NCBI RefSeq assembly: GCF_001194135.2
Contig: NC_068984.1
Span: 107,893,729-107,957,728, forward strand
Length of the DNA: 64,000 bases
Origin: Octopus bimaculoides
Taxonomy: Eukaryota
Reading direction: 5' to 3'
Both the position numbers and the translations under genes were made by a program. Positions 6,301-51,410 of the stretch are shown in pieces. A model generated the notes under the pieces. The model saw nothing but the letters and a program-made list of their open reading frames with translations. It did no database searches and was not told the DNA's origin. Position 1 is the stretch's first letter, and the number at the start of each line of letters is the position of its first letter.

Positions 6301-9300
6301 NNNNNNNNNNNNNNNNNNNNNNNNNNNNNNNNNNNNNNNNNNNNNNNNNNNNNNNNNNNNNNNNNNNNNNNNNNNNNNNNNNNNNNNNNNNNNNNNNNNN
6401 NNNNNNNNNNNNNNNNNNNNNNNNNNNNNNNNNNNNNNNNNNNNNNNNNNNNNNNNNNNNNNNNNNNNNNNNNNNNNNNNNNNNNNNNNNNNNNNNNNNN
6501 NNNNNNNNNNNNNNNNNNNNNNNNNNNNNNNNNNNNNNNNNNNNNNNNNNNNNNNNNNNNNNNNNNNNNNNNNNNNNNNNNNNNNNNNNNNNNNNNNNNN
6601 NNNNNNNNNNNNNNNNNNNNNNNNNNNNNNNNNNNNNNNNNNNNNNNNNNNNNNNNNNNNNNNNNNNNNNNNNNNNNNNNNNNNNNNNNNNNNNNNNNNN
6701 NNNNNNNNNNNNNNNNNNNNNNNNNNNNNNNNNNNNNNNNNNNNNNNNNNNNNNNNNNNNNNNNNNNNNNNNNNNNNNNNNNNNNNNNNNNNNNNNNNNN
6801 NNNNNNNNNNNNNNNNNNNNNNNNNNNNNNNNNNNNNNNNNNNNNNNNNNNNNNNNNNNNNNNNNNNNNNNNNNNNNNNNNNNNNNNNNNNNNNNNNNNN
6901 NNNNNNNNNNNNNNNNNNNNNNNNNNNNNNNNNNNNNNNNNATATATATATATATATATATATATATATACGACTGGCTTCTTTCAGTTTCTATCAACCA
7001 AATCCACTCACAAGGCTTTGGTCAGACCGAGGCTATAGTAGAAGACACTTGCCCAAAGTGCCACGCAGTGGGACTGAACCCCAAACTATGTGAAGCAACT
7101 CTGAGTTAAGACATATGTTTGTACATTTAAAGACTCCTTAGTAAAGACTCCTTATACTCCCAGTCGTGAAGAAACTAAACAAAAGACACGGTTGATTTTC
7201 TGTTTCACTATATGGAAATTATGGTAACTGGGTTGTATTTCGTCATTTACTTCTATTTCATGTTTTCGTGTGCCACTGATCATGCAACTTTTCCATCTAC
7301 AATCTCTTCATAACTTGTGTGTGTGTGTGCGCATGCGTGCGTGCATGCATGTGTATATATGTGTAAATAAAAGGGGTGGAAGAGGTAGTCGACTGTTACA
7401 GCTGTTTCAAAGGCAAACCGGGTGCATGATATTTAACACTACGAAGGTCTTGTAAACGTCCGATGTACTTCTTCATCTCAAGTACATATGACTGCTTAGT
7501 TTAATGAAAAATAGGGTGTATTTGATGCATTGATTAATAAATTTTATTGATCTATTGTCGTGTCATCTATATTTTCAATACAAACCGTGTTTATCGTGGT
7601 TTTTAGTACGATCATTTGACTACCCGACATCATCATCATCATCATCATCATCACCATCATCCTTATAAATGCATATATATATACATATACATGTATAGGA
7701 ATAAATAGATGGCATCAGGAAAAACAATGGTTATGTAATGAGCTTCATTAGCTCATAACTGTTTCCGCTATAAGATACGGTGGACTCTTAGTTGAGTCTC
7801 TGGGTAACATCCCAAAGCTTCATCAGAGCCTTGAATATGAAATGCACTTTATTTGGGAAAATTACATCTTCAGATCATAGAGGAGTTAGGAGTGAGAAAG
7901 TTAATGTTGGTGCCTATAGAATGATCTGACACCAAAAAACTAAGATTCCAACACATCCTATAGCAGAAACAGCTGTAAGCTAATGAAGTTCATTATATAA
8001 CCATTGTTTTTTTTCCGGTGCCATCTCCTTTTTCCTATAACCACTCTATACTCATCTAACATTGTGTTCTAGACTATATGTATGTTGAGTTCTACACGAG
8101 GTTATAAGTCTCGCTACGCCTAATCGAAATATATATATATATACATGCTAGTCTATCACTTGAGATATCCCTGAAACAGCTGTGTGACTTCAAATTCACC
8201 CTAATTAGATATTCTAAATGATTTGAGATACTCATCCTGCCTTATTTTTTATTGTCCTTCTTCTTCTAATATAATACATACTTGCTAATTCAGAAGCCTA
8301 ACGCGGATCCCTAGGTCCAGCCTCAGCTGTGAACTTGGAACTTAACGCATGACCAATTATAGCACTTACTCAACGAGCCTATTCAGTTAGAAACTCCTCA
8401 TTTTCATCTATATATATATATANNNNNNNNNNNNNNNNNNNNNNNNNNNNNNNNNNNNNNNNNNNNNNNNNNNNNNNNNNNNNNNNNNNNNNNNNNNNNN
8501 NNNNNNNNNNNNNNNNNNNNNNNNNNNNNNNNNNNNNNNNNNNNNNNNNNNNNNNNNNNNNNNNNNNNNNNNNNNNNNNNNNNNNNNNNNNNNNNNNNNN
8601 NNNNNNNNNNNNNNNNNNNNNNNNNNNNNNNNNNNNNNNNNNNNNNNNNNNNNNNNNNNNNNNNNNNNNNNNNNNNNNNNNNNNNNNNNNNNNNNNNNNN
8701 NNNNNNNNNNNNNNNNNNNNNNNNNNNNNNNNNNNNNNNNNNNNNNNNNNNNNNNNNNNNNNNNNNNNNNNNNNNNNNNNNNNNNNNNNNNNNNNNNNNN
8801 NNNNNNNNNNNNNNNNNNNNNNNNNNNNNNNNNNNNNNNNNNNNNNNNNNNNNNNNNNNNNNNNNNNNNNNNNNNNNNNNNNNNNNNNNNNNNNNNNNNN
8901 NNNNNNNNNNNNNNNNNNNNNNNNNNNNNNNNNNNNNNNNNNNNNNNNNNNNNNNNNNNNNNNNNNNNNNNNNNNNNNNNNNNNNNNNNNNNNNNNNNNN
9001 NNNNNNNNNNNNNNNNNNNNNNNNNNNNNNNNNNNNNNNNNNNNNNNNNNNNNNNNNNNNNNNNNNNNNNNNNNNNNNNNNNNNNNNNNNNNNNNNNNNN
9101 NNNNNNNNNNNNNNNNNNNNNNNNNNNNNNNNNNNNNNNNNNNNNNNNNNNNNNNNNNNNNNNNNNNNNNNNNNNNNNNNNNNNNNNNNNNNNNNNNNNN
9201 NNNNNNNNNNNNNNNNNATATATATATATATATATATATAAAATTTCCCGGATCACTACCAAAATTTCATCATCTGTTCCTTGTGTTATTTCCAACTTTT

Positions 9301-11720
9301 CCTGCAAGTTTCATCAAATACCGTTCACAACTTTTTGAGTTATTTTGCACACAGACAGACAGACGGACAAACCAACGCCGATGAAAACATAACTTCCTTC
9401 CTTGGCGGAGGTAATAACTAACGAAAGATATATCAAATATGGTTATATTACTTTTATACTTTTTGACAAGAAAAACAACTCCGCTTTTATAAAGTTTACA
9501 TATATTTGATGTTAACCTATGAATAGTAGCATGCGATATTTCACACCTTAAATGAATTCAAGGACAATAGCGTGCAATAGCTAAACAGCTTAGCATATAG
9601 GTATCAATTCAATTGTTGTAGACACTAGCAAATGCAAACGACAAAAGTTGTAACGATAGTAAAAGGTAACAAGAAAGGACAGTATTCTAATTGCAGTTGA
9701 CTTATTGTTTACAGGGGAGCGGTAGAGGATAAGATATTATAATGGTTTATATCGAGAAGAATCAACAACACGAACATGATTAACCAGTAACTCTGGATTG
9801 GCGTGCTTTCTTCTATTTAAAATTTAATGGATATATTTCTGCTAACGATAGGATTGGATATATACGATCTCACATATATGAAACCTTGTGACATGAAAGA
9901 GATATAATCTTCCTCGTGGAGACTGAATTCAAATCTGATCGTAACAATCTAAATATTGTATTAAATTCAGTCGAATATTACACTCACTCTGCATATTAAC
10001 CGTCCAAAACTAATAGCAGCTATTTTCTTACCAAATTATAACATTCGATTTTCAGTACTTCTCTGTATATATTTTCTATGTATAAACTTCCCTTTTCCAA
10101 ACTACTTTCGGCCGTTTACGGTCGCTGTCAATATTTATGTATAAAATTATGTACGTTAACTCCAGCATCTGAGCACTTTAGCTCTTATTTCTAGCATTGT
10201 AGTTGTTCTGACACGTTCTGTCATATTTAATGACAATTGTAGTTTTCCTTTTTGGTGGTACATTGCTAAACAGCTGATTAATTTAATTGTGTGTGTGTGT
10301 GTGTGTNNNNNNNNNNNNNNNNNNNNNNNNNNNNNNNNNNNNNNNNNNNNNNNNNNNNNNNNNNNNNNNNNNNNNNNNNNNNNNNNNNNNNNNNNNNNNN
10401 NNNNNNNNNNNNNNNNNNNNNNNNNNNNNNNNNNNNNNNNNNNNNNNNNNNNNNNNNNNNNNNNNNNNNNNNNNNNNNNNNNNNNNNNNNNNNNNNNNNN
10501 NNNNNNNNNNNNNNNNNNNNNNNNNNNNNNNNNNNNNNNNNNNNNNNNNNNNNNNNNNNNNNNNNNNNNNNNNNNNNNNNNNNNNNNNNNNNNNNNNNNN
10601 NNNNNNNNNNNNNNNNNNNNNNNNNNNNNNNNNNNNNNNNNNNNNNNNNNNNNNNNNNNNNNNNNNNNNNNNNNNNNNNNNNNNNNNNNNNNNNNNNNNN
10701 NNNNNNNNNNNNNNNNNNNNNNNNNNNNNNNNNNNNNNNNNNNNNNNNNNNNNNNNNNNNNNNNNNNNNNNNNNNNNNNNNNNNNNNNNNNNNNNNNNNN
10801 NNNNNNNNNNNNNNNNNNNNNNNNNNNNNNNNNNNNNNNNNNNNNNNNNNNNNNNNNNNNNNNNNNNNNNNNNNNNNNNNNNNNNNNNNNNNNNNNNNNN
10901 NNNNNNNNNNNNNNNNNNNNNNNNNNNNNNNNNNNNNNNNNNNNNNNNNNNNNNNNNNNNNNNNNNNNNNNNNNNNNNNNNNNNNNNNNNNNNNNNNNNN
11001 NNNNNNNNNNNNNNNNNNNNNNGAAAGGGCGCGCGCCGGGGAAGCGGCCGTACGTGGCGGGAACAGCTCGCCTTTCGTTCTCGCTTCTGCTTCTGCTTCC
11101 GGCCCGACTAGCGAGCGCGCGCCGCTCGATCCTCCGTCTCCCGCAATGCCAGACCGTCATCGCTGCGACACGCCACGGAGCAGCCGACAGCTGCAGCAGC
11201 AGGGAACGCACCGTCCGCCGTTCGTGCGCACTCTTCTGCCTGCCGCCCTCGCCGTCGTTGCCTCCTCTTCCTCCTCCGTGGCGGCCGCCGCCGCCGCCGT
11301 CTACTTCTTCGGTCGGCGTTCGCTCTGTGGATCTCGTTTTCACAAAGGTGTCATTAATATCACATTTGAAAATCGAAACGAAAAGGGTTTGACATTTCGG
11401 ACATAGTACTCTTCATCCAAAAACGAAAAGAAAGGAAGATAAAGAAGGAAGTTAGGAGCCGGGTGGGAGGCATAGGGAAATCAAGAAAGAAAAAAATCGG
11501 AGGAGGGAAAATGTGACGAAGGAAGGAAAGGGAACTGAGAAAGATGACCACCAGAACTCGGGTTCAAGTACAAAGCAGTCACGAAATTGCATTTGACCGA
11601 TAACTGATGAGGATTTGGTGACCTGTGTTTGTTTTCCGTATATTTGTGCATCTATTGTGTTTTTTAACTGTTTACTATTATTATATATATATATATACAT
11701 ATGTATGCAAGTATGTATGG

Positions 11721-11751
<31 letters not shown>

Positions 11752-12932
11752 TGTATGTATGTATGTATGTACGTATGTATGTATGTATGCATGTATGTAT
11801 GTATGTATGCATGTATTTACGTACATCAATTCGTAGTGGTATCAGTATGTGCGTTAGTGTTATATTCCAAACGCTATTTTTCTTTTCTTTTTTTTTTTTT
11901 TNNNNNNNNNNTTTTTTTTTTTTTTTTTTTGTTAATCTTTGAACAAAGGTACGAATTATAAAGATCGAACAACTTTTTTTCCCTGAGTTTACTAGAAGGA
12001 TACGTTTATCATTCATATATTGATCTAAATACTTTATTATCAATTCTAAAAAATTATTTAAAATATAAAAGAAAATCTTTTGGGTAAAGAATCGGCTTTT
12101 CTGTCGCTATTTTTAGCGCAGATATTAACGAAGTTGCATTAGTAGATGATAGCAAATCGGTTGGTTGAACACAAACCATAATTATTACTGATTAAATATA
12201 CTATTGATCAGAATGAATAATAAAATAGTATTGATATATATGTTTATTAATATCATTATTCAGATGGTTGCATATAAGTATACATATATATATACGCAAA
12301 GATACATACGCGTACATACACATATAAATACATACATATGCTTGTATGTGTTTGTACATGTATGTATATCAGTGTATATATATAGATATTATATACGTGT
12401 GTATTTATATATATGTGTGTGTGTGTGTGTGCATGTATGTACCTATGTATGTGCGTATACGTAAATGTATTTTTATGTGTATTACGTGCATGAATATATG
12501 TGGATGTACATAAATACATATGTGTGTGCATATATGTGTGTGCGTGTGTGTGTATGTAAACATATATACATGTATATTTTTTTCGTATTAATATCTTTAT
12601 ACAGATGGTTGCGTCTTCGCTGGAAAGCATTACAATGAGGGTGAGAAATGGAGAGATGGATGCAAATATTTCTGTGAGTGTTCCGATGGAAAGAGAGGAA
12701 TATATATTTGTAAAGAAAGGTAAATTATACACATAAGAATCGTTATCCTTCCAATTATTTCCTTTTCCTTCTCGAGCTTGTTCGACTTTTTATTAACTTA
12801 AAATGATATTGACTACTAGACTATTCTAGTACACAGTTGAAACTTTTTTAACGTTAAATAACAAACTCTATTCCTACCATTTCACTGATTTATGCGCAAC
12901 TAACAACACAGTCCTCATATATTAAATGCTTT

Positions 12933-17500: not shown

Positions 17501-19584
17501 GGTGTACAAATTTGGGAGTGATACCAAGTCACTGTGGTGTAATAAATGATCCTCATGATGACTGTTGCCGACAAATGGTCTGCACAAACATCACAGAGAT
17601 AATTTCACGTACAACACCAGCGGCTCTAGGTAAGTTTTCGTATTATAAAGCATATTTTGCTCTCGCATTACCATTTATATATAATAATCTAAAGAAATCA
17701 TTGCCATTCATCTGGAAAGTTACTATCAAGCACAAAATATAACCTGTGTATTATTTCATTTGCTGGCATATTGATAGAACAGCAAGGTTGAGTTTAATCA
17801 GAAGGAAAAGAAACTGTGTAAAACTATTTTTATAAAGCTATTTTTGTAAGGTTTTTATATAGAAATTTCTACAGAGGTTCCTATTATAAAAAGTCACTCT
17901 TCTGTTATCATTACACACAACACCAGTAATTGTCGTTTGCTTCATACTATTTGCTTGTTTCAGATATTATTAAGCAAACAGTATCACTTATATGGAAAAC
18001 TACAAAAGATATTACGAAAGATATAGATTATCTACATTTCATTTAATGACAACGTGTAGAGAAGCTTAAAATTTACAGACATTTGAGCAATCATATCTTT
18101 ATGAAGATCCTATTTATAAAAGATATATTTATGAAAGATACTTTTATAAAAAATAGTTTTATAGAAGCTAGTTTTATAGAAGATAACTCTACAGAAGATA
18201 ACTTTATGAAAAAAAGATCTGTACAAAATACCTTTATAAAAAATGCCTTTAAAGAAGATAACTTTATTTTAAAAAAGTGCCTTTATAAAAAATAACTTTC
18301 TAAAATATAGTTTTATGAAAAAAATACCTTTGTAAAAAAAATACCTTCATAGAAGATAATTTTATAAAAATAGCTTCATAAAAGCTGACTTCACAAATTC
18401 TCTTTTATTTCTAAAGTAATACTTTTTGATGTTTTTAATAATCAGGAGGTACAGATTGGAAGAGTCGCTAGAGCGTTGAATAGAATTATAAAAGTATTTG
18501 TTTGGCTTTCTGCGCTCAGAGTTCACATCCTGCCGAGGTTGCCCTTATCTTTCATTCTTTCGGATTCGATAAAAATAGGTGGTACCTGTTCTTGTCCTTT
18601 GCGTTCTCGCAGAGACTCCTGCAACGTCATCGTTGCTGAAGTGTATCGGTTTTAAGGTGACGGCCTTTCATTTTGTGTCGTAGGAAAGGAGACACTTTCA
18701 CGCAGGGGTAACTGCCAATCGCTCGCATACAAATAGGTAAATAGGCCTGCGCAATGTGTGCAGATACATAGCCTCAATAATCATGAAACACGTTAAAAGG
18801 ATTCTGAAATCAACACTTAGTCTATACATATGTATACTTGTAGAAAGAGGGATCTTAAGGGATTAAAAAAAATAAAACCGTCTAAGTACAAACTATAAAT
18901 ATAAAAACATAATCATTAGAACGTCGGACAAAATACCTGAAGCGTATTGGTTTCGGCTCTTTATGCTCTGAGTAGTTGAAATTCTGCCGAGGCCGACTTT
19001 GCCTTTCGTCCCTTTCAGGGACGATAGAATAAGTACATGTGAAGCACTGGAGTCGATATAGTCGACAAGTTACCTCTCCCTAAAATTCTGATCTTGTGCC
19101 TATAATAAAAAGTATGAACATTATTATTACTATTCAGTGAGTGATTAGTGAATGCCATCACTCACGCTGGGGTGCAAATATATCAAGCCAATACATACAT
19201 CATGACTACCCGTCTGGTAAGGGTATACTAGGCACATACATCACAACCATATGTATATGACATGGTGATCTCATATCAAGATACACAGTGCATGACTTTG
19301 CAGGTGGAGCTCATTTAGAATTTTCTTCAGGTCGTGTAGCCCATTCCTGAATAAGTTTTGTTTAAGGATGTTAAACGAAACACCTATGTTTCCAGGACTG
19401 AATGGCTCACACCCCAAAGAATTCCTTTCAACACATGGTTATGATGGTCCCCCACTACTTCTACATGTGATCAGAGATGCACATATCGTCAACCACCAAA
19501 AGACATTCTCAATTGGTTAAAGTCAAGTAACTGGGCAGAATATTTGCTGTACATCCTTATTATTATTATTATTATTATTATTAT

Positions 19585-24104: not shown

Positions 24105-26411
24105 GTGAGGACGCATGACCTAGTGGTTAGGGTCCTGTACACACAATCGTGAGGTCGTGGTTTTAATTCTTAGACCGGACTTGAGCAAAGCACTTCAACT
24201 TACGGTGCGTGCTCGGTGATCACTTCGACACCTGACGTGTGGACGCGTCCACCTGTTCAGGTGTTCAAGCAAATGTCGATTTGGTGGAGGGTATGAGTTA
24301 ATGTAAGTCACATATATTTGATCTCTATAAACAAATCCTTAGTGCAGCATGTCGTTCGACAAAAACTGAACGCTCATACGTCATATTCGACGGGACAGTC
24401 CATCGTATATATACATTTATACACATACACATACATACATACATACATACATACATACATACATACATACATGCATTCATATTCATTCAGTAACTATATC
24501 GTATGTTTTTGACGTTAAAATACCTTCTGCTCATGGCAATCAATGTTTCTCTGGACAGGGAAGTGTTATTACAAAGGCCAGTCGTACACTAAAGGTCAGA
24601 GTTGGGAAGATGGCTGCAGTTTGAGATGTACATGTGAAGATGACACTACCGGTTATTACAGCTGTATCGACAGGTGAGTATTCACTGCGTATTCACTGCT
24701 TATGTCTCTGGACACTACGTAGACTCATATATAAGTGTCTCTACATCACGATCAACCATACGAGATCAACCATACGAAAGGTATTCAGTAGAATAAGACA
24801 CTGTGGAACTAATGGTATTATATGTATATATATATATATATATAGAAGAGACAAACACACTCACATATATATAAGTAATATTTATCGCCACATCAATATG
24901 GCTGATCCGATGTCACTTCCATTTTTAAGCCCAGGAAGACCCTCTGCTAAGAACGTGGTAGTAACGTGGAACAGCTATATTGATGTGGCGACAAACATTA
25001 CTTTTCAGCATAGTTACCACTTTCACCTCTTATAGAGGCTCTCTAACTAGCTACCTTGTTTGTCATATATACAGGGTGTCGATTGGTAAGTATCGCCATT
25101 TTATATTTAATATTTTTTATTTTGTGAATGCGCATTGTTTGCTTTTGATTTTGATTTCATTGACTATACAGTATAGTAGGGGCAGTTAGGCACCCTCTGT
25201 GAGTGAAAAAGTACCATGACGCTTTTCACTCTGTCAGAAATATAGAAACGACATGCTGTACACAGAGGCCTACATCAAGTGCCTAGGGGAGGTAGTGCTG
25301 CTCTGGGTGAAGAGGGTATCTCCTGGTAGACCCTATGTCTGGCAACAGGACTCTGCACCATGTCACACAGGCAGGAAAACCCAGTAAGATAATTTCTGCG
25401 ACCACATCACCCCTAACGTCTAGCCACCTAATTCCCCAGAATGCAACCCCCATTGATTATTATGTGTAGGACGCAGCTGATCGAGAGACCAAGGAAATTC
25501 CTTATAACACCAAAGATGAACAAAGATAACACCAAAGGCAAGGATTATGCCAGCATTTACCGACTTAAAAAGGAGAGACCGTCGAGAAGAGTTGCAGGAG
25601 ATTCCCAAGTCGTCTGAAGGCCATGGTTTAAGCCAATGGCGATTTTATTGAATGACTTTACTCTTTAGTATTTCAAGATAGTTTTACGTAATTTTGGTAA
25701 ATATATCTGTTAAAATAAGTTGACAGTTTTATTTTCGATTTGTGTAATTTAGACGACAGATTATTCACCGCACGCTGTATATATATATATATATATATAN
25801 NNNNNNNNNNNNNNNNNNNNNNNNNNNNNNNNNNNNNNNNNNNNNNNNNNNNNNNNNNNNNNNNNNNNNNNNNNNNNNNNNNNNNNNNNNNNNNNNNNNN
25901 NNNNNNNNNNNNNNNNNNNNNNNNNNNNNNNNNNNNNNNNNNNNNNNNNNNNNNNNNNNNNNNNNNNNNNNNNNNNNNNNNNNNNNNNNNNNNNNNNNNN
26001 NNNNNNNNNNNNNNNNNNNNNNNNNNNNNNNNNNNNNNNNNNNNNNNNNNNNNNNNNNNNNNNNNNNNNNNNNNNNNNNNNNNNNNNNNNNNNNNNNNNN
26101 NNNNNNNNNNNNNNNNNNNNNNNNNNNNNNNNNNNNNNNNNNNNNNNNNNNNNNNNNNNNNNNNNNNNNNNNNNNNNNNNNNNNNNNNNNNNNNNNNNNN
26201 NNNNNNNNNNNNNNNNNNNNNNNNNNNNNNNNNNNNNNNNNNNNNNNNNNNNNNNNNNNNNNNNNNNNNNNNNNNNNNNNNNNNNNNNNNNNNNNNNNNN
26301 NNNNNNNNNNNNNNNNNNNNNNNNNNNNNNNNNNNNNNNNNNNNNNNNNNNNNNNNNNNNNNNNNNNNNNNNNNNNNNNNNNNNNNNNNNNNNNNNNNNN
26401 NNNNNNNNNAT

Positions 26412-30315: not shown

Positions 30316-33068
30316 NNNNNNNNNNNNNNNNNNNNNNNNNNNNNNNNNNNNNNNNNNNNNNNNNNNNNNNNNNNNNNNNNNNNNNNNNNNNNNNNNNNNN
30401 NNNNNNNNNNNNNNNNNNNNNNNNNNNNNNNNNNNNNNNNNNNNNNNNNNNNNNNNNNNNNNNNNNNNNNNNNNNNNNNNNNNNNNNNNNNNNNNNNNNN
30501 NNNNNNNNNNNNNNNNNNNNNNNNNNNNNNNNNNNNNNNNNNNNNNNNNNNNNNNNNNNNNNNNNNNTTTTGAAACTTTCACGAGACAAAAACTGCCTCT
30601 CCATTCTCACCTTCCTTTTCAAGTGATACTTGAAAAGGTTGATGAGCGATTGGCCACCACACACATTCTTTCACCATGGCCACCAGTACGATGAAAACTG
30701 CCTTGCTTTCCCAGTTGAGGGAAGGTGGCGGAGCAATCGACAGGACAGAGTCGGCCGACAGGCGGACTCGTCCCACACGTGACAGCAGACGTTCGGCATA
30801 AGCCCACAGGTCCGAAATGGTTGGACACTGCACGAGTGTGTGCAGAACGGGTTCGTCGCTCTGACTGCATCTCGGGCAAGTCGGTCCGATGTGTCTTGAG
30901 CCGTGCCTGTAGAGCTTATCCCGAACAGGTAATGCTTTTCGATAGCACTGCCAGGCCAGGGATCTTTGGTGATTNNNNNNNNNNNNNNNNNNNNNNNNNN
31001 NNNNNNNNNNNNNNNNNNNNNNNNNNNNNNNNNNNNNNNNNNNNNNNNNNNNNNNNNNNNNNNNNNNNNNNNNNNNNNNNNNNNNNNNNNNNNNNNNNNN
31101 NNNNNNNNNNNNNNNNNNNNNNNNNNNNNNNNNNNNNNNNNNNNNNNNNNNNNNNNNNNNNNNNNNNNNNNNNNNNNNNNNNNNNNNNNNNNNNNNNNNN
31201 NNNNNNNNNNNNNNNNNNNNNNNNNNNNNNNNNNNNNNNNNNNNNNNNNNNNNNNNNNNNNNNNNNNNNNNNNNNNNNNNNNNNNNNNNNNNNNNNNNNN
31301 NNNNNNNNNNNNNNNNNNNNNNNTGTTTGATCCACAACCGCAGTTCGGCCAAGGAGACGAGCTACGGGAAAGCGTGCTGCACAAACGGCGACCACACCTG
31401 TTCACAATCGTCTATGAAGCACCGGAGATGTCGCAGTCTCAGCACATGTCTGCGCATCATCAACCACGGCATGCCTACCCCTCCATTTAGCGGGTGTTGA
31501 CAGCAAATCGATCGCCTAACCATCGGAACGCTTCCCTTTCACAAGATAGATAGGTATGGCCGGTTCATAGGGTAGTCCAAGGTTTCACGTCTATAAAGCG
31601 CTTGGTTTTAAATACGTCTCATTGGACCTTAATGACCTGGTTGGCAAGATTCTTGAAGTGAATTCGTATGTTGAAACAAATTTTGCATCCAAATCCATTT
31701 GGAACATCCGAAGCAGCGGTTTTTTAAAATTCTTACGTACGTAAGAAGAAATTATATAAACATGTGTTTAATATAATTTCTTCTACATTTGCTCTGCATA
31801 GCGTAACCAGTAACACTACAAAGTATAGTAGTAACTAAACTACTATACTGGAACCAAACTGGATGATGATAATCTACAGGCGCAGAGCTCTAAACTCACT
31901 AGTAGTAGTCATACAACTCATTTACGCACAAAGTATATTAGTTTACATGCATATAAGTTGCGCTCAGCCGATATATATATATATATATGCAAATGAATGA
32001 ATACGGAATATATACGTGAGCTCCTTCAAGTTTCATGTTCAGATTGTGTCATAAATTGGATGGGCCTGTATAACGTACCCGCGACGATCCAACAACTGTT
32101 CAGGCTCAAATAATAGATTAGACTATCCGAGCATAAAACTTGAAGTAGCTCATCATTAAATGCTATTTGTCTCTCGCTGAATTGAGGGCATTTTTGTCTA
32201 TCTATCTATCAATGTATATTTCAGGTGTCCCGGTTATTCAAGTATCCCTACAACTTGCAAACTAAAACCTGATCCGAAAGATCCAAAATGCTGCAAAATG
32301 CCTGATTGTCAATCTTCGAATAAACTTGTTCCATTACGAAGTCTCAGAAACGGGTTCGGCAGATCTCCTCGTCCAATAAATTCTCAACAAAGTAAGTATT
32401 TATTTTCATCTAGCATAGTATTATATTACAATCCCATACATAAAATCTCTATTAATTTTTCCAAATTGTTCTGTTCCTTCTGATTGAGCTGAATTCTGGT
32501 ACCTTATTTTGATGAACCCGCAAGACTGAAAGTCAAACATCATTCATAAAAATACACCATTGAACTCTGAATAATGCCATCAGACCGTTGACCGCATGCA
32601 TTTCTTCGTTGTTATGCATCTTCAGCTACGGCTACTTTTTGTCGCACTCATTGTTTTCAATCTAACATAATGATACTGAAAGTTAGCACTTTGGCTTCAT
32701 TATTCTAATTCACCTAATCATGTTCTTTTGAAGCGGTCACTCCAGAACTGTATAAATATATATTCGTTTATTCTTTCAGCTAGTTTCAGGCATTCGATTG
32801 CAGCAAAGTCAGGACATTTCGCACAATACATTTTAATCCATTTTAGTAACTTAATGGAGTGAATAAGCTAACGTGCGGCACGAACATTTGTTCACTATAA
32901 ACAAAACATTTGTGTAGGTTGCTCGGCAAAAGCTGGCTGCTCATGAGCCGTCTTCGACAGGAGAATCCATCGGGTGTGTGTGTGTGTGTGTACAGTATAT
33001 CCTTTGTCCTTTACCTGTTTCAGTAACCAAACTATGGCCATACTGGGACACCGCCCCGAATACATTTA

Positions 33069-33143
<75 letters not shown>

Positions 33144-35092
33144 ATGTATGTATGTATATGTATGTATGTATATGTATGTATATGTATGTATGTATATACA
33201 TGTATATGTATGTATGTATATACATGTATATGTATGTATGTATGTATATATATATGTATATATATATATATATGTATACACATATATATAGATATGCATA
33301 TATCTATATGTATGTGTGTAGTCTCACGAGATAACTTCTGCAGTGAAGCTATTTTGTGCCTTAGTGTACACGAACATGTTAAATACGATTTTAAAAGCCT
33401 GTTTCCTTCAACGCCACTTAGTGCACCTCTAATTAATTCCAGCTTGACAAAGCTTTGTGTACATCACTAAAGAACTATTTGCTGCCTGATATAAGAACAA
33501 TCTCTTCTTAGTTGCTATGAAAGGCTAGCTACTCGGTAACCGTAGCTGAAGTCCCAGTTAAATATTGGGTCGATGTAATTAGCTGTGCTCTTCTTCACAA
33601 ACAGTTGTTGCCTTCACTTTACTCATAAATCATTATTTCATTTGTTATATTTCAGGGTGGTCATTTTTTGCCAAATAAACACATACTATATACTCGTTCT
33701 TCACTTCAGCTTTATTATTATCCTTATTTTAGTATCCTATGTCAAAAATCTTTCGTCACAAATTCTGTGACCTCTTCAGCGACTCTCCATCCCGCATGTC
33801 TCCTCCTCTCCTGAAGCTGAAGTGAAAAATGTCTATATAGTGCGTGTGTTTATTTGGGAAAAAAAAATGACCATCTCGAAATATAACGATATTTGTTTCG
33901 ACGCATGATTGAACATCAGAACTCTTACAAAACAAATACAGAAACGTAATTATTTCATTTGATTTTCTTTTCTTTTCCTTTCAGATGTTTGTTTGTTCAA
34001 TCACACAACCTACCATCAAGGTGACAGTTGGAACGTTGGTTGTGAAATGGAATGCGACTGTACAAATGCTAAAAAGCAACAATTCAAATGTCAATCGAGG
34101 TGAGTAAATTTAGTTAAAATGAGAGCGGATAATGAAAAAACGAGATGGGATTTTGCTGCCTGATATATAAAACTGTCAATTTTTCTTTCAGATGTAACCA
34201 ATATTTCTCCATTCCTTCCAACTGTCAAAAGGTATATGTCAACAACAGCTGTTGTCCACAAGTGCAGTGTACATCGAATCCAGTTTGCAAGGATCTTGGA
34301 AGTGTATGCCAAAGTGCAGGAACCCAGATATGTCAAGGAAAATTCAAAGACTTTGCACTGATCAATTGCCGGAAGACTTGTGGATACTGTAAGTATTTTT
34401 ATTAGCCCGCCGGACAAAATGCTGAGCGGCATTTCTTCTGTCTTTACGTTCTAAGTTCAGTTTCCACCGAAGTCGACTTCGCCTTTTATCCATTTGGATC
34501 GATAAAACAAGTATCAGCTGAGCCCTTAGATCGATGTAATTGACTAGACCCCTCCCTAAAAATTTCAGGCCATGTGCCTATAGTAGAAATGATGTCTTTA
34601 TGAAAACTCTTAGTTTATTTTTTGGGGTATGATGGGAATTGTCAGGTGCCCACAGCCAGCAGACTAGGGTGACTCTTGTTTGCTGATCATGCCTCAAGAA
34701 TCCTGCAGAGAACTCTTGTAAGTGTTTTGTCTTCACATTCGTACCAATTTCTTTGAGCCACGTTGGTAGTAGAATGCTGATGCTTCCAAGCGCACCAATC
34801 ACTATTGGTATCACGTCGACTTTCTTCATTGTTCACAACCTGCATATTTCCCACATCAATTCATCATAGTTGTTCACTTTTTTCTTCTTTCTCTTCGATC
34901 TTGTTGTCACCAGGACATGTTATGTCGATTATCGGGCATGTTATTTTCTTCTTTTCTGCTCACTTCAACAACGTCAGGTTTCCAATGTCTAATCTGATGG
35001 CCACACTGAATCATTACATCCCACAAGATTTTGCAATCTTCATTCTCAGTAACTCCCCCTGAGATTTTACCATACCACATCTTTGATCTTCC

Positions 35093-35259: not shown

Positions 35260-37581
35260 CATCATTATCAAATTTCAATCCATCTTTGATCTGGCTTCAT
35301 GGATAGAGTATAACGTATCAAACATCTTGAAAGATTCAAAATCAATAAACGATACTTTGTGTTTGAATAAACTGTCAATCTCTATTTCCTATAAAGTATA
35401 ATTTCAAGATAATCTTAAATTTGTACATATTTTATCAATTAAAAACAAATTTTAAAAGTTCCGTGGCAAATATCCGTTTTTGATTATTAGCTTCTCCAAA
35501 ACAAAACATTTTTAATGGCTTAAAGGAGGGCGGAAAGGCAGTAATCATGTTCTCCGATTACCAGTAATGACATCTTGATTGCTTTTAACCCCTACTTAGA
35601 TCCCTGTAAATAGCCCATTGAGCTTGTAGGAGGGAGACTAAAAAGAGAGACCAAAATGAGAAGCCAGAAAAGAAGACTAAAAGGGGAGGTTAAAGAAGGA
35701 GGAACGAAGAGGAAGTTTAAAAAACGGTACTATAGAGGGTGGCCAAAAATGGTGACCAAAGAAGGGGGCCAGACAAAGAGACCATAAATAGAAGTCGAAA
35801 AGAGTGACCAAAGAGGGATACCAAAAGAAGGAAACCAAAGAGGTCTGAAAGAAAGGCATCTAAGAAGTCAGTTGACCTCCTAGAAATATCCTCCAAGTCT
35901 TCCTGAAAGCGCATCCTACAGTCTTATATAAGGAAAGGACTCATTTGATATCAAAGGTGGAATAACCCTAAACCAACCAGTAAATCTTTGATTGACAATC
36001 TCTTTGAACAGTGTTATTCAGCAACTGCAATTATTTCTGCCACCCTTCATCTAATATATGGTTTGTTCAGAAAGTGCATTCATTTTGCCCCTAATTACTT
36101 TCATTTCGCTCTTTGATATGTTTTATCGGACAACTAAATATTCAGTAGATGACGGTGGTTTGAATAAAGTAAAACCTTAGCCTTAGCTCCCATATCAATT
36201 TGGTCACTAAATATATTATGTTTATATCATACCTCATTTGTGTATTGATCATTATTTCTACCATATAGTGGAGGCGCAATGACCCAGTAGTTAGGGTAGC
36301 GGACTCGCGGTCATAGGATCGCGGTTTCGATTCCCAGATCGGGCGTTGTGAGTGTTTATTGAGCGAAAACACCTACAGCTCCACGAGGCTCCGGCAGGGG
36401 TTGGTGGTGAACCCTGCAGTACTCTTCCACCACAACTTTCTCTCACTTTTACTTCCTGTTTCTGTTGTACTTGTAATTCAAAGGGTCAGCCTTGTCACAC
36501 TGTGTCACGCTGAATTTCCCCGAGAACTACGTTAAGGGTACACGTGTCTGTGGAGTGCTCAGCCACTTGCACGTTAATTTCACGAGCAGGCTGTTCCGTT
36601 GATCGGATCAACAGGAACCCTCGACGTCGTAAGCGACGGAGTGCCAACAACAATCTATCATATAAGGTGACGAGCTAGCAGAATCGTTACCACACTGAGC
36701 AAAATGCTTAGCGACATTTCATTCGTCTTAACAATCTGAGTTCAAATTCTGCCGCGGCTGACTTCGCCTTTCATCCTTTCAGGATCCATAAAATAAGTAC
36801 CTATTGAGCACTGGGGTCGATGTAATCGATTTACTCACTCCTCCTAAGTTGCAGGCATTGTGCCAAAATTTGAATCTAATAATTACTTTCGTCCTACATC
36901 TAAACATCGATAAAATTGTCTAAGTGAAGCAGCTTTGGCCCTTAAATATATTTGTCTTCATAGTACCTCCCATTTCTCTAATTATAACAAATATGTTCAC
37001 ATAAAAGGTTATGTTGTGTACAGTTAAGAAGTTTACTTCACACTCTCTGCGTAGATTTGAAATCCATCTGACAGTCCGTTTAAAGAAGGGTTTTCTGACA
37101 GCTTTCTTTCGACGCAATACTTGTCCTTGTGTGTCGAAGAAAACTGTAAGAAAGCACGTCGAAATTACAGTATCTTTTGTTTGGTGATATAATTAATGCA
37201 TCGCCTAGATTGACGCCACTACATGTCCCTTGGCTGTCCTTGATGGAGTCCAATTTTTTGTTAGCTTAGTATTTAGTTCGGGTTGGAGAATAAGCTTTTC
37301 TGTCTATCACTGAGAAACTGACAATGGTTTCTCATCGTTTCTGACAATGGCTGCTCATCCTCCTAAATGTTAAAGATAATTTTTTTTATATAATTTTGTC
37401 TAAGATATATGTTTTGCTTTGAACCCAAAACACAAACAACTAATATTTCGTTCTATTTTTGTCTTTCCCTTTAGGTGGTGGTGGTGGACCAGTGTCAACA
37501 ACACGTGAGTAGTTTTTCTTTTCCTTCAGCTATATCATATATGTATCTGTGTATTCATATGTGTACGTTTACATATCTATG

Positions 37582-47557: not shown

Positions 47558-48977
47558 TGTGAAGCAATATGAAAGCTTGGTCGTTTTCCTTGTTTAAACT
47601 TCGTTGAAATAATCACAGGTCTATACCTACACATAAAAACTAAGGTTAATAATACATCATTAGCTAAATTTGTACATTCTGTCATTGATAGTAACACTGG
47701 ATGTTAAAATTGTTTGATCCATCGTATTTAATACACATCCATATAAATGTAGTGGTGGTACTTAGTGCGAACTGTGTATCTGGTATGTTCCGTACTACTT
47801 GACTACAATCAACGTGATAAATTAATCGTTAGATACAGATATCTTAAGAACAAATCGTTCCTGTATGCTAACTATACCTAACCTTGAAATAACTTACCAG
47901 ACCAACATCAATAAGCTTGATTAATGCGATTGACTACTTTCCTATCCCAAAAAAGACCATAGGTCGATTTCCTTTTCTGTAATAGATAATGAGTGGAGGC
48001 GCAATGGCCCATTGGTTAAGGCAGCGGATTCGCGGTCATAGGATCGCGGTTTCGATTCCCAGACCGGGCGTTGTGAGTGTTTATTGAGCGAAAACACCTA
48101 AAAGCTCCACGAGGCTCCGACAGGGGATAGTGGCGAACCCTGCTGTACTCTTTCACCGCAACTTTCTCTCACTCTTACTTCCTGTTTCTGTTGTGCCTGT
48201 AATTCAAAGGGTCAGCCTTGTCACACTGTGTCACGCTGAATATCCCCGAGAACTACGTTTAGGGTACACGTGTCTGTGGAGTGCTCAGCCACTTGCACGT
48301 TAATTTCACGAGCAGGCTGTTCCGTTGATCGGATCAACTGGAACCCTCGACATCGTAAGCGACGGAGTGCCAACAACAACAATAGATAATGTAATAGACC
48401 ATATTCTGAAATTGTATGCCCTAATGATTCGTTTTAAGTTTTTCTAAAGTTGTTACTCTAATTACCGCCTTCGTTCTGTAATTTTCCTAAAACGTCTTCC
48501 TGATTGTTTTATTCTTAGATATATTTATTATTGATGATTTATTCAAATTAATTTTCATTATATACAAGGGAAAAGGTATATAGTGTCTTAGAGGATAAGC
48601 AGTACCTGATGATGGCTAACTAAGCCGAAACTTCAAAGTCACTGTCGACATTTTCTTTGTAAAAATTTATAAATATGTAAAAAGGTAATGAGTGACCTTT
48701 CAGTTTGATGTTAAAATGTTTTTATATATAGCCTCATATAAACCATTTATTTATGTGTATGCATATATATATATCTATATACATATATATATATGCATGT
48801 ATGTATATATATATATATATGTGTGTCTGTATTTATGTATATATGTATGCATGTTTTATGCATATGTGTATGTATGTGTATATATGATTATATATATGTA
48901 TGTGTGACCTTTCACTTTGATGTTAAAATCTTGTTTTTATATATAGCCTCATATAAACCATTTATGTATGTGTATGC

Positions 48978-49008
<31 letters not shown>

Positions 49009-49109
49009 TATGTGTGTGTGTGTGTGTGTGTGTCTGTATTTATGTATATATGTATGCATGTTTTATGTGTATGTATGTGTATATATGATTATATATATGT
49101 ATGTGTGCC

Positions 49110-49205
<96 letters not shown>

Positions 49206-50714
49206 TATGTATGTGTGTGTGTGTTAGTGTGAATGTATGTAGCGAGGAAGAGTATGTGACGGAGTGAGCACATTGGATGTATTTTATATATTAATGTTAA
49301 TTTTTCTTTTTTTTTTTTTCTCCTGTCTCGGTTCTACATTAGTACCCGCTGACTGCCTAGATATAGATCCGCGATGTGCCGATTATACAGGATTTGATGT
49401 ATGCAGCGCTGTCTTGTTTAAATTTGCAGTGGTCAACTGTCGAAGATACTGTCAGTATTGTGGTAAGTAGTTTTAGATTTTCTTGTTGTTGTTTAGTCCC
49501 CTGCCATCCTTGATCAACAGCGTCTCAACTATGTCCATCTCGTCGTATTGTAGACTTCATTACTCAATGCATCCTTCCATTCGTTAAAACGGTTGGATAT
49601 ATGACTGGAAAACGATTAGACTACTTTTTCGAGTAAATTGTAGAGTCGCCCCTTTGTTCGTTCGGCCTTTTGCTGTTGTTGCTGGACGGGGCGCTGGTCC
49701 GTCGCAGGATTACTTATTTTTACCAATTGAGTGAACTGGAGCAACGTGAGGTATTTTACTCAAGGACACAACGCGTCACCTGGTCCAGAAATCGAAACTA
49801 CAATCTTACAATCATGAGTTCAAAACTCTAAACACTAAACCACGCGCCTCCACACCAAAATAAGTATTTCAAGACCGTTACAAAAACTAACGAAAATCCT
49901 ATGAATCAATTTCCTATTGCCTCTTTACAACTGAGTGAGTACTTACAGCTTGCTAGACTGGGGTTATTGAAAGTTAAGTGAATACAGCAATAAGTGCGTC
50001 ACAGCAGTAATTGGGTTAACTCCCTCCACTGTTTCATTGATCTGTGGAACTGTCCATTCTTATAATCAAAATTACGATTCAATATCTGAAACATATTTTG
50101 TCAGTGAGTTTCTACAACGCTTAGAATATAGAGACATCCAAGAGCGTGCATTAGAGGAAATTGTATATAAGTTCTGTATTCTTTTATACGAAATGAGATT
50201 TATTCTTGTTGCTGGGGTATACCAATAACAGGTAGTTCGACACATATATNNNNNNNNNNNNNNNNNNNNNNNNNNNNNNNNNNNNNNNNNNNNNNNNNNN
50301 NNNNNNNNNNNNNNNNNNNNNNNNNNNNNNNNNNNNNNNNNNNNNNNNNNNNNNNNNNNNNNNNNNNNNNNNNNNNNNNNNNNNNNNNNNNNNNNNNNNN
50401 NNNNNNNNNNNNNNNNNNNNNNNNNNNNNNNNNNNNNNNNNNNNNNNNNNNNNNNNNNNNNNNNNNNNNNNNNNNNNNNNNNNNNNNNNNNNNNNNNNNN
50501 NNNNNNNNNNNNNNNNNNNNNNNNNNNNNNNNNNNNNNNNNNNNNNNNNNNNNNNNNNNNNNNNNNNNNNNNNNNNNNNNNNNNNNNNNNNNNNNNNNNN
50601 NNNNNNNNNNNNNNNNNNNNNNNNNNNNAAAAAAATACCTAGAAGACGGAAAAAAGTTGCTAGCAGGCGACTACAGAGTTTCGAACCCTGTACATCTCAG
50701 ATAAAAAAAATTTT

Positions 50715-50756
<42 letters not shown>

Positions 50757-51410
50757 CACAACTAAAATAATATTCAAGGAATCAAACAGAACTCGCAGCA
50801 AGTACTTTGCAGAAAAAAATCCTTTGTTGATTAGTTCTGTCCGATCCTTCATTATGTTACCAGACAAATATGGGTGAATATATGTTTGTGAGGCGTCTGT
50901 AAAGTGTATACAATTCGTATGCAACTTATAACTGGCGTCGATGATGCGAATGAACATGAATAATGAAACAGCTGTCAATTCATATATACGTAAATATATA
51001 TGTATATGTCTATATGTCTGTGTATATACATAGACACACACACACACACACACACACAATAGCACTACTATATTCTACACTTTGATCTCAACTACTGGGC
51101 AGGAACCTGAAAGGCCCAACTCGTTAAGGATGAAAAAAAAATTGAAATCATGTTCATGAATTCAGATCAACTGTATTTTGCCACCTCTTTCCAGATTTTG
51201 CAAATCAATTAGCCAAATAACCATACAAATCTCATCTGTACACTACACTCGTCAAATCCAGTAGCCTTCCTACTGAAAAAGAATCTTTATTTAGTGGTCT
51301 GACACCCTCTGATAATATGTTATCAGTTTGTTTTTTTAATTATTTTAAATGTTATTCGGTTTCCTAAAATTATGTTGTTTTTGTTTTCTCTAGACCAACC
51401 AATACCGTAA
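1070..51410 (+). CDS. 5'-partial multi-exon gene: tandem VWC-like repeats plus two C-terminal ShKT domains, probably secreted
   Basis: 13 GT-AG exons join in consistent phase: 1070-1093, 2107-2221, 3597-3736, 5481-5595, [exon missing or alternative], 12605-12719, 17502-17629, 24559-24673, 32225-32391, 33985-34099, 34192-34388, 37475-37504, 49343-49462, 51394-51410. Repeat pattern C-x(12)-W-x3-C-x3-C-x-C-x9-C-x3-C...CC...C. Several N-x-S/T sequons (NKS, NAT, NIT, NHT, NNS). No transmembrane segment before the stop. Confidence 0.9.
2107..2221 (+). CDS. VWC repeat 1, first half ([39 protein letters not shown])
   Basis: ttccag| ... |gtaaga, 115 nt, phase 1-2; not in the ORF track. Confidence 0.9.
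2285..2560 (-). mobile_element. RTE-clade LINE 3' fragment
   Basis: Minus strand reads [10 protein letters not shown]...[10 protein letters not shown]-stop, resembling RTE ORF ends. Confidence 0.6.
2945..3437 (-). mobile_element. SINE family A (tRNA-like head, central microsatellite); other copies 17-235(+), 5705-6121(-), 6942-7095(-), 32997-33065(-), 41455-41640(-), 43262-43665(+)
   Basis: Shared blocks agaagacacttgcccaag, ttagcggttcggcaaaa, ccagcatggccgcagtc across copies. Confidence 0.8.
3597..3736 (+). CDS. VWC repeat 1, second half plus linker ([46 protein letters not shown])
   Basis: ttacag| ... |gtatgt, 140 nt, phase 2-1; CCPxxxC motif; inside ORF 3454..3783. Confidence 0.92.
4830..5060 (+). 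mobile_element. SINE family D (tRNA head plus CORE/V-like body); related pieces 22830-22935, 24103-24360, 49725-49855(-), 57985-58140
   Basis: tagtggttag...ttcgattcctggaccgg head, then gcgttgtgttcttaagcagaacacttcatttc and ggcgtcccgtccagg. Confidence 0.6.
5481..5595 (+). CDS. VWC repeat 2, first half ([38 protein letters not shown])
   Basis: ttttcag| ... |gtaata, 115 nt, phase 1-2. Confidence 0.92.
9241..9418 (+). mobile_element. Non-autonomous Helentron-associated (DINE-1/pearl-like) element, 3' part
   Basis: aagtttcatcaaa motif, ACAG/ACGG microsatellite, and terminal hairpin ccttcc-ttggc-ggagg followed by taataa. Confidence 0.55.
11023..11335. other. Isolated GC/CpG-rich segment
   Basis: Dense CpG, GCC triplets and GCGCGC motifs in an otherwise AT-rich intron; starts right after an N gap. 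Confidence 0.7.
12605..12719 (+). CDS. VWC repeat 3 (or alternative to repeat 2), first half ([38 protein letters not shown])
   Basis: atacag| ... |gtaaat, 115 nt, phase 1-2. Confidence 0.92.
12974..14458 (+). mobile_element. R4/Dong-clade non-LTR retrotransposon, 5'-truncated, (TAA)n on both sides
   Basis: ORF 13045..14289: [24 protein letters not shown] thumb region and [25 protein letters not shown] restriction-like endonuclease; arrays at ~12935-12973 and 14459-14535. Confidence 0.85.
14630..15410 (+). mobile_element. Degenerate R4/Dong fragment (different subfamily)
   Basis: [39 protein letters not shown], and [14 protein letters not shown] zinc knuckle across frameshifts. Confidence 0.8.
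15431..15509 (+). repeat. G-rich minisatellite, 5 x 16 bp (GGAGGGGGAGTCGTGA)
   Basis: Units start at 15431, 15447, 15463, 15479 (15 bp) and 15494. Confidence 0.9.
15690..16385 (+). mobile_element. Decayed RTE-clade LINE RT C-terminus; a second fragment at ~17005-17150 (-)
   Basis: [29 protein letters not shown]; the minus copy reads [18 protein letters not shown]...FAGH. Confidence 0.65.
17502..17629 (+). CDS. VWC second half plus Thr-rich linker ([42 protein letters not shown])
   Basis: catacag| ... |gtaagt, 128 nt, phase 2-1; inside ORF 17452..17742. Confidence 0.9.
18080..18400 (+). repeat. Degenerate ~15-bp tandem repeat (tttatagaagataac-like)
   Basis: Periodicity appears as a 5-aa repeat ([10 protein letters not shown]) in ORF 18083..18295. 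Confidence 0.6.
19136..19555 (-). mobile_element. (TAA)n-embedded interspersed repeat; second copy 53005-53545
   Basis: Colinear shared blocks (actacccgtc, caaccatatgt, tttaaggatgtt, aaagaattcct, gatcagagatgcacatatcgtca); both copies have ATT arrays on both sides. Confidence 0.75.
20443..21612 (-). mobile_element. R4/Dong fragment with 3' UTR
   Basis: [58 protein letters not shown]; ATT array at ~21620-21668; same 3' UTR recurs alone at 51620-51716. Confidence 0.85.
24559..24673 (+). CDS. VWC first half ([39 protein letters not shown])
   Basis: ggacag| ... |gtgagt, 115 nt, phase 1-2. Confidence 0.9.
25070..25779 (+). mobile_element. Internally deleted Tc1/mariner-superfamily (maT/DD37D-like) transposon
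   Basis: [42 protein letters not shown]-stop; ends TA-CAGGGTG and CACGCTG-TA. Confidence 0.75.
28130..28985 (-). mobile_element. Internally deleted mariner (DD34D-like) transposon
   Basis: N-terminal [20 protein letters not shown] and catalytic [19 protein letters not shown]; degenerate TIRs gtgtcaaaaggttatgggact / agtccaataactttttgatgc. Confidence 0.85.
29961..31543 (-). mobile_element. L1/Tx1-clade LINE, 5'-truncated, in a GATA array
   Basis: [15 protein letters not shown] thumb region, [18 protein letters not shown] zinc finger, [17 protein letters not shown]; 3' UTR with AATAAA at 29983-29988 (-). Confidence 0.8.
32225..32391 (+). CDS. VWC second half plus basic linker ([55 protein letters not shown])
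   Basis: tttcag| ... |gtaagt, 167 nt, phase 2-1. Confidence 0.9.
33653..33878. mobile_element. MITE with ~35-bp terminal inverted repeats
   Basis: cagggtggtcattttttgccaaataaacac...tata versus tatag...gtgtttatttgggaaaaaaaaatgaccatct. Confidence 0.55.
33985..34099 (+). CDS. Last VWC first half ([38 protein letters not shown])
   Basis: cctttcag| ... |gtgagt, 115 nt, phase 1-2. Confidence 0.92.
34192..34388 (+). CDS. Last VWC second half plus ShKT domain 1 ([65 protein letters not shown])
   Basis: ctttcag| ... |gtaagt, 197 nt, phase 2-1; CRKTCGYC closely matches the ShK C-terminus CRKTCGTC. Confidence 0.93.
34597..35093 (-). mobile_element. R4/Dong endonuclease fragment
   Basis: [28 protein letters not shown] and [12 protein letters not shown]; ATT array 35094-35258. 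Confidence 0.85.
36268..36653 (+). mobile_element. SINE family C (tRNA-Arg-like head, ~390 bp, CAA tail)
   Basis: A-box and B-box (ggtttcgattcc) head; flanking tctaccatata / tctatcatata (10/11) look like a TSD; near-identical to 47992-48380. Confidence 0.85.
37475..37504 (+). CDS. 30-nt micro-exon ([10 protein letters not shown]) completing ShKT1 Cys6 and forming a linker
   Basis: Strong pyrimidine tract tttttgtctttccctttag| and donor |gtgagt; T from the previous exon plus GT gives TGT (Cys). Confidence 0.75.
39938..40797. mobile_element. Two mariner 5' ends in inverted orientation
   Basis: + strand 39938-40195 gives [16 protein letters not shown]; - strand 40200-40797 gives [21 protein letters not shown]; shared left-end sequence tcaataagtatc..gaagctaaagcatgcagagt. 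Confidence 0.8.
43870..45900. mobile_element. Penelope-like element fragments with ~150-bp inverted repeats
   Basis: + strand [18 protein letters not shown] at ~44535-44591; RT-like minus piece 45294-45596; inverted arms 43870-44017 and 44801-44965. Confidence 0.5.
47992..48380 (+). mobile_element. SINE family C copy with an 11-bp TSD
   Basis: AATAGATAATG at 47981-47991 and 48381-48391. Confidence 0.9.
48692..49106 (+). repeat. Tandem duplication, ~212-bp unit
   Basis: gtgacctttca.tttgatgttaaaat...gcctcatataaaccattta starts at 48692 and at 48904. Confidence 0.85.
49343..49462 (+). CDS. ShKT domain 2 ([39 protein letters not shown])
   Basis: long T tract then cattag| ... |gtaagt, 120 nt, phase 1-1; six-Cys ShKT spacing ending CxxxCxxC. 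Confidence 0.9.
51394..51410 (+). CDS. Terminal coding exon (DQPIP-stop)
   Basis: tttttgttttctctag|ac caa cca ata ccg TAA; phase 1 fits the preceding exon; AATAAA signals follow. Confidence 0.65.

Follow-up and report, generated by a model that had tools for sequence, protein, structure and literature searches.

Sequence analysis of the terminal ShKT domain of an Octopus bimaculoides VWA/VWC/ShKT protein: a ShK-like Lys-Phe pair in a probable matrix module

We analysed a stretch of 64,000 nucleotides of the Octopus bimaculoides genome (hereafter the window; NCBI RefSeq assembly GCF_001194135.2, contig NC_068984.1, positions 107,893,729 to 107,957,728 of the forward strand), in which a plus-strand exon at positions 49343–49462 encodes a six-cysteine ShKT domain, here called ShKT2. 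A first-pass annotation had seen in this domain the Lys-aromatic pair of the toxin ShK and had proposed it as a candidate K+ channel modulator. Our analysis indicates that ShKT2 is probably a structural or protein-interaction module at the end of an Octopus matrix-type protein composed of VWA, VWC and ShKT domains, and not a pore-blocking toxin. The supposed dyad would consist of ordinary scaffold residues plus one Lys, and a K+ channel role is possible, without positive support.

According to the model that we propose, the ShKT2 exon would encode the last domain of a large secreted glycoprotein of the extracellular-matrix type. The domain itself would be a small three-disulfide module of the ShK type, with its disulfide core packed against a conserved helix face (L, F, A, N). 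The Phe of the pair would be the near-invariant core aromatic of the family. The Lys would lie on the variable, solvent-facing side of the helix, as a lineage-specific surface residue that was already present when the gene was duplicated in tandem.

The ShKT2 exon has phase 1-1 and codes for (L) + 39 residues + (D), with the translated part at 49345–49461. Its acceptor is the AG at 49341-2, which follows a long polypyrimidine tract, and its donor is GTAAGT at 49463; long (TG)n and (TA)n microsatellites lie directly upstream (about 48800–49220). The cysteines are spaced C-6-C-8-C-11-C-3-C-2-C. A regular-expression scan of the 64 kb in six frames found the full six-Cys ShKT pattern only twice, both times on the plus strand and in the same gene, and ShKT2 is therefore not a chance open reading frame. 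It is identical to residues 371–409 of the RefSeq protein XP_052823622.1, and the exon was found in annotated proteins of three Octopus species.

ShKT2 and the preceding domain of the same gene, ShKT1, align to the Pfam ShK profile (PF01549) over its full length (positions 2–37 of 37) with scores of 17.7 and 20.8 bits, respectively, both below the gathering cut-off of 20.9. The whole orthologous protein of O. sinensis scores 19.9 bits, and the product of a tandem paralogue, with 26.8 bits, passes the cut-off. Counting from the numbered cysteines C1–C6, ShKT2 has the non-Cys signature of the family, i.e., D (C1+2), F (C4-5), A (C4-4) and N (C4-1), and it is without the consensus Trp, Pro-Asn and Tyr. 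Assignment of ShKT2 to the ShKT family (Pfam PF01549, SMART ShKT) is supported by the Cys framework, the signature residues and homology with hundreds of domains of the family, the Pfam threshold being narrowly missed.

The residues reported by the first-pass annotation were all recovered by translation. Lys (codon AAA, 49420–49422, plus strand) and Phe (TTT, 49423–49425) stand six and five residues before the fourth Cys, which opens CxxxCxxC, with Asp at C1+2 and Arg at C4+2; ShKT1 has Phe at -5 and Asp, not Lys, at -6.

The register of the pair was determined with a hidden Markov model built from 90 family domains, to which ShK (PDB 2k9e/1roo) was aligned. Tyr23 of ShK comes to lie in the column of the conserved Trp (C4-5), and Lys22 in the one preceding it (C4-6), with L-K-Y-R-L-S-F-C of ShK against the family consensus k-k-W-a-k-e-n-C. 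These are the columns of K-F in ShKT2, and the proposed correspondence with K22-Y23 is thus confirmed. The domain BmK1 (...P-K-Y-M-G-H-Y-C) aligns likewise. The profile match to ShK is weak (E 0.37–1.1), and offsets counted from the third Cys disagree because the loop has 11 residues, versus 10 in ShK. A three-sequence MAFFT alignment, which put Lys22 of ShK one column off, was ambiguous and was superseded by the 90-sequence profile. A search of PDB sequences with ShKT2 alone did not retrieve ShK and gave only chance matches to zinc-binding FYVE domains.

We estimated how unusual the pair is from 405 unique ShKT domains in 176 family proteins. Asp occurs at C1+2 in 96.8% of these domains, an aromatic residue at C4-5 in 97.3% (Trp 79.8, Phe 13.1, Tyr 4.4), and Lys or Arg at C4+2 in 54.6%. 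The other helix positions are similarly biased, with Tyr/Phe at C4-8 in 84%, Ala at C4-4 in 69.6%, and Asn at C4-1 in 71.9% (84.5% for Asn and His together). Although all the ShK-like residues cited earlier are present in ShKT2, three of the four are generic to the family, so that the Lys alone is informative; the generic residues would say nothing about toxin function. Lys is found at C4-6 in 17/405 domains (4.2%), or in 12/400 (3.0%) without the Octopus copies, and this is one of the most variable positions, also occupied by Ala, Pro, Asp, Ser, Thr, Gly, Gln and others. From the family rate, the chance that a protein with five ShKT domains carries at least one Lys at C4-6 is roughly 14–19%. 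The spacing class (6,8,11,3,2), to which ShKT2 belongs, comprises 27 of the 405 domains.

An AlphaFold2 model of ShKT2 based on the 90-sequence alignment has a pLDDT (predicted local distance difference test) of 93.7 and predicts a helix at residues 22–31, which covers K26 and F27 and precedes C4. A single-sequence model (pLDDT 66.6) was discarded in its favour, and a Foldseek comparison of the 40-residue AlphaFold2 model with the PDB returned no match. The conserved helix positions -8, -5, -4 and -1 (L, F, A and N in ShKT2) are spaced i, i+3, i+4, i+7, and this conservation pattern would mark one buried face of the helix, with the Phe buried and the Lys exposed. The net charge of ShKT2 is 0 (+1 in O. 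sinensis), as compared with +7 for ShK and a family mean of -0.5. The hydrophobic fraction is 0.36 versus 0.236 +/- 0.046 in the family, which puts ShKT2 in the top 1.5%. The hydrophobic stretch of the helix corresponds to window positions 49408–49437, the Lys lying within V-L-F-K-F-A-V-V, and its hydrophobic residues are unchanged in three Octopus species. Such a surface would fit docking or self-association better than the action of a toxin.

Between O. bimaculoides and O. sinensis, 31 of 36 ShKT2 positions are identical, and the whole region is 90% identical; on this comparison, ShKT2 appears neither more nor less constrained than its neighbours. The five substitutions that separate O. bimaculoides from O. 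sinensis/vulgaris are all conservative (L/V, R/K, A/T, Y/F and Q/R), and position 7 is K in O. sinensis where O. vulgaris has R. The K-F pair and the entire helix are unchanged in the three species. The same Lys is found in the tandem paralogue (XP_052823619.1 in O. bimaculoides, XP_036358133.1 in O. sinensis, CAI9721274.1 in O. vulgaris), whose terminal ShKT, CHDKDPNCAGYKIDVCHGSLYKWGLSHCQRFCHYC-DRKAP, has Lys at -6 and an aromatic residue at -5 (L-Y-K-W); the Lys is therefore older than the tandem duplication. In the paralogue's counterpart of ShKT1 (the first ShKT after the VWC domains), position -6 is Asp, as in ShKT1. In Haliotis and Elysia, position -6 of the equivalent post-VWC domains is Ala, Ser, Gly, Pro or Asp, and not Lys. 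The Lys is kept within Octopus but not in these gastropod homologues.

The paralogue shares the VWA-ShKT-VWC-ShKT plan and a similar C-terminal tail and differs by extra TSP1 repeats and one more ShKT domain before the terminal one. In its terminal ShKT, C2-1 is Asn, four His are present, and the helix is less hydrophobic than that of ShKT2. A further VWA-ShKT sequence, the 861-residue transcript product P0118 (L001, contig 4079, run SRR22411499), has a basic residue at C4-6 in 2/4 of its ShKT domains (FRRW, FLKW), the terminal one included. It was considered as a distant cephalopod orthologue and found uninformative, being only ~30% identical to all family members.

The gene is best seen in its O. 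sinensis orthologues, XP_029635428.1 and XP_036358134.1 (2043 and 2041 residues, 'collagen alpha-4(VI) chain-like'), with CAI9721272.1 in O. vulgaris. The window product is 90% identical to XP_029635428.1 over 336 residues. The O. sinensis protein consists, in order, of a signal-peptide-like N-terminus, 6 VWA, 2 ShKT, 2 VWC, ShKT, 5 VWC, ShKT1, a linker, ShKT2 and a five-residue tail, i.e., six VWA, seven VWC and five ShKT domains, of which ShKT2 is the last. The window encodes the last third of this protein, from the third VWC on. The description of the product as a secreted multi-VWC scaffold is thus correct insofar as a genuine ShKT exon belongs to a secreted multi-VWC protein, but the part encoded in the window is only the C-terminal third of a six-VWA protein of ~2040 residues. 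The Pfam VWA profile matches the O. sinensis protein with 874 bits in six stretches, and the DxSxS metal-binding motif is intact in each of the six VWA domains; the VWC and ShK matches are weak. The 2043-residue orthologue contains no run of at least four G-x-x repeats of the collagen triple-helix (Gly-X-Y) type, and it is therefore not a collagen despite its database name, which derives from VWA similarity only. No dibasic processing site was found in the linker between ShKT1 and ShKT2.

The conceptual VWC5-ShKT1-ShKT2 peptide, used as the query of an exhaustive HMMER search, matched 183 proteins at E<=0.001. They belong to molluscs and a brachiopod and have the VWA-VWC-ShKT make-up in common, which is seen in Haliotis, Elysia, Batillaria, Aplysia, Gigantopelta, bivalves and Lingula (brachiopod); in Haliotis, Elysia, Batillaria and Lingula, the order of the VWA, ShKT and VWC domains is also shared. 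The occurrence of the same make-up across molluscs and in Lingula indicates that large secreted proteins of the VWA/VWC/ShKT type form an ancient family of lophotrochozoans. This domain architecture suggests a matrix or interaction role for ShKT2.

ShKT2 resembles ShK of Stichodactyla helianthus (PDB 1ROO) in the six-Cys framework ending in CxxxCxxC, Asp at C1+2, a basic residue at C4+2, the Lys-aromatic pair at C4-6/-5, and a basic residue before C2. However, ShK is a free 35-residue venom peptide with a charge of +7, whereas ShKT2 is the tail domain of a protein of ~2040 residues, has no net charge, and carries a hydrophobic helix; the loop lengths are 6/8/11 in ShKT2 and 8/4/10 in ShK. Of the features of sea-anemone type 1 K+ toxins, ShKT2 has the Lys-aromatic columns, but it is neither a free small peptide (about 35–37 residues) nor does it have a basic surface, and its membership in the ShK toxin class would fail on precursor type and charge. 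ShKT (SXC) domains also occur in large secreted structural, mucus or adhesive proteins, such as Toxocara Tc-MUC-1 to -4 and Patella vulgata P-vulgata_14; these have no Lys at the dyad position, and ShKT2 does. The ShKT domains of such mucins and adhesive proteins are regarded as structural modules that are stabilised by disulfides and are not toxins (PMC7333891). A literature search on the gene's accessions and its expression in octopus tissues found nothing.

Some of the data weigh against a purely structural reading of ShKT2. Lys at -6, although rare in the family (3–4%), has been retained by three Octopus species and by the last ShKT domain of the paralogue; C2-1, the position of ShK Arg11, is Arg/Lys in ShKT2 and basic in just 5.9% of family domains; and V, F, V and V at -9, -7, -3 and -2 form a combination unique among the 405 domains, which a structural role alone does not explain. 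There is also a precedent: the BmK1 domain of a Brugia malayi metalloprotease (PDB 2MCR), like ShKT2 the C-terminal ShKT of a large secreted multidomain protein with the pair in the same register (Lys-Tyr, ...YSPKYMGHYC), blocks Kv1.3 in its native form at low micromolar concentration (PMC5401880). BmK1 differs in host protein and phylum and in that its block was measured, while ShKT2 is known from sequence. Together with the register equivalent to K22/Y23 in the profile, the rarity and retention of the Lys, the basic residue equivalent to Arg11 and the confidently predicted helix, in which the Lys occupies a variable and presumably exposed site, this precedent is what can be said for the earlier reading that ShKT2 is dyad-competent, with Lys -6 entering the pore, Phe supporting it, and the domain acting either tethered or after release. 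BmK1 is accompanied as a large-protein precedent by MMP23, the ShKT domain of which modulates Kv1 channels, including Kv1.3, without the canonical dyad (PMC6409789). We nevertheless consider pore block by ShKT2 very unlikely. The charge is 0 where ShK has +7, the Lys is surrounded by hydrophobic residues (V, L, F, F, A, V, V) where ShK has polar and basic ones, and the aromatic residue is a core residue of the family (97%) and therefore may not be free for channel contact. The linker offers no dibasic site at which the domain could be cut free, the host is a matrix-type protein, and the gastropod homologues have no Lys. Published work shows, moreover, that Kv block neither follows from a dyad nor requires one (PMC5793123, PMC6409789): dyad peptides can be inactive, as are an Oulactis peptide and AsK132958, in which the Lys is inaccessible (PMC5793123), and Acan1 is weak, with only 829 nM (PMC8239465).

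The hydrophobic residues lend themselves to another explanation, namely that the helix around the single Lys binds a protein, its own copy, or a membrane or lipid, and in this way anchors or cross-links the matrix protein. Multimerisation modules of matrix proteins and mucins often stand at the extreme C-terminus, which is where ShKT2 lies. Only in Octopus ShKT2 are -9, -7, -3 and -2, helix positions that are usually polar, all hydrophobic; the hydrophobic fraction is high, these residues are constant in three species, and the terminal domain of the paralogue also has the L-[FY]-K-[FW]-x-[VL] pattern. Since such a surface is read from sequence only and the same residues could fit a slightly different core packing instead, we regard docking or oligomerisation as a specific function with reserve, as an unlikely but conceivable account. 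A more speculative idea joins it to channel activity: the terminal ShKT domains of both tandem Octopus genes may form a distinct subtype (L-[FY]-K-[FW], hydrophobic helix, with a basic Arg11 site in ShKT2) of tethered or proteolytically released, K+-channel- or membrane-active 'matrikines', by analogy with collagen VI alpha-3, which releases a bioactive C-terminal Kunitz fragment; we think this highly improbable, slightly more so than direct pore block. Least probable of all is that the Lys-Phe pair is a chance feature of a drifting, dispensable terminal domain. In its favour, no helix site of the family varies more than -6, and ShKT2, which falls under the Pfam ShK cut-off, no longer has the consensus Trp, Pro-Asn and Tyr; against it, all six Cys and the splice sites are intact, the five interspecies substitutions are all conservative, and the domain is kept in the tandem paralogue. 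The preferred reading, a structural or interaction module of the matrix-type protein, probably accounts best for the data as a whole.

The gene spans 163 kb in O. sinensis. Twelve plus-strand exons of the gene could be located in the window, each of them with AG/GT boundaries. VWC1 is encoded by an N-half exon at 2107–2221 and a C-half exon at 3597–3736. The VWC2 N-half exon (5481–5595) is orthologous to O. sinensis residues ~1620–1658 and lies outside the RefSeq model. The VWC2 C-half exon (O. sinensis CPTFVNLPSDCQMVDVPGDTCCQMPVC...) was not found in the resolved window sequence and presumably lies in one of the N gaps at 6224–6941, 8423–9217 and 10307–11022; the window is AT-rich and microsatellite-rich and contains 13 such gaps. 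The exons that follow are those for VWC3 (N-half 12605–12719, C-half 17502–17629), VWC4 (N-half 24559–24673, C-half plus linker 32225–32391), the VWC5 N-half (33985–34099), and the VWC5 C-half together with ShKT1 (34192–34388). ShKT1 begins at 34286, and this exon contains 34 of its residues and the T of the last Cys codon.

The junction between the two ShKT domains depends on a 30-nucleotide linker mini-exon at 37475–37504 (GT GGT GGT GGT GGA CCA GTG TCA ACA ACA C), which encodes GGGGPVSTT. The ShKT1 donor T|GTAAGT splits the sixth Cys codon, of which the mini-exon supplies the GT, and the last base of the mini-exon opens the Leu codon completed by the ShKT2 exon. Loss of the sixth Cys of ShKT1, or an end of the protein at this point (CKYFY*), which had been considered as T|GTAAGT + TA... 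gives Leu, was ruled out by this mini-exon. The join of ShKT1 to ShKT2 was accepted because the mini-exon was found and the spliced product equals the RefSeq protein. The terminal coding exon at 51394–51410, (G)AC CAA CCA ATA CCG TAA, encodes DQPIP and the stop; the tail is DQPIP in O. bimaculoides (matching the C-terminus of protein P0154) and DRPIP in O. sinensis and O. vulgaris.

The nine exons from 12605 to 51410 splice to exactly residues 82–414 of XP_052823622.1, a 414-residue O. bimaculoides RefSeq protein annotated as 'cysteine-rich motor neuron 1 protein', the locus of which (GCA_001194135.2, CM046604.1) is identical to the window across 46,265 bases. XP_052823622.1 is an incomplete model of the gene named 'collagen alpha-4(VI) chain-like' in O. 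sinensis. It begins with an 80-residue exon at 11146–11385, which adjoins the N gap 10307–11022 and has no O. sinensis counterpart, and it omits the VWC exons 2107–2221, 3597–3736 and 5481–5595, which are clearly orthologous to O. sinensis residues ~1534–1660. The annotation of the O. bimaculoides gene is fragmented, the VWA part being kept separately as XP_014779039.1 and XP_014779025.1.

Several further features of the locus were noted. A degenerate part-copy of the VWC1 N-half exon lies in the intron just 3' of the VWC1 C-half exon (3820–3864) and looks like a remnant of exon duplication. The introns around ShKT2 contain copies of interspersed repeats: one pair, at 36267–36653 and 47992–48379, is direct and 94% identical; a second pair, at 49682–49838 and 4838–4994, is inverted, resembles a short interspersed element, and is 77% identical. 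The O. vulgaris protein CAI9721272.1 has, in place of most of ShKT1, a 34-residue segment that maps to window positions 35961–36062 with 88% identity. The models of O. bimaculoides and O. sinensis have this segment within an intron; it represents either an artefact of gene prediction or a cryptic exon used alternatively. Between the O. sinensis isoforms X1 and X2 (P0151/P0153), the only difference lies where the linker mini-exon begins (CGGSGDGPM versus CNGDGPM), which suggests alternative acceptor use at the GGT-repeat.

Taken together, the results correct the exon map of a gene that the O. bimaculoides annotation breaks into pieces, and they draw attention to a strongly hydrophobic surface on its terminal domain. 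They also carry a caution for the family: dyad-spotting in ShKT domains comes down to a single Lys at a variable site with a base rate of ~4%, because the dyad 'Tyr', the Asp5 equivalent and often the Lys30 equivalent are scaffold residues of ShKT domains. Block of K+ channels by ShKT2, if it occurred, would make the domain the first ShK-type channel ligand of a cephalopod and the Octopus protein an example of a matrix protein with a channel-active module.

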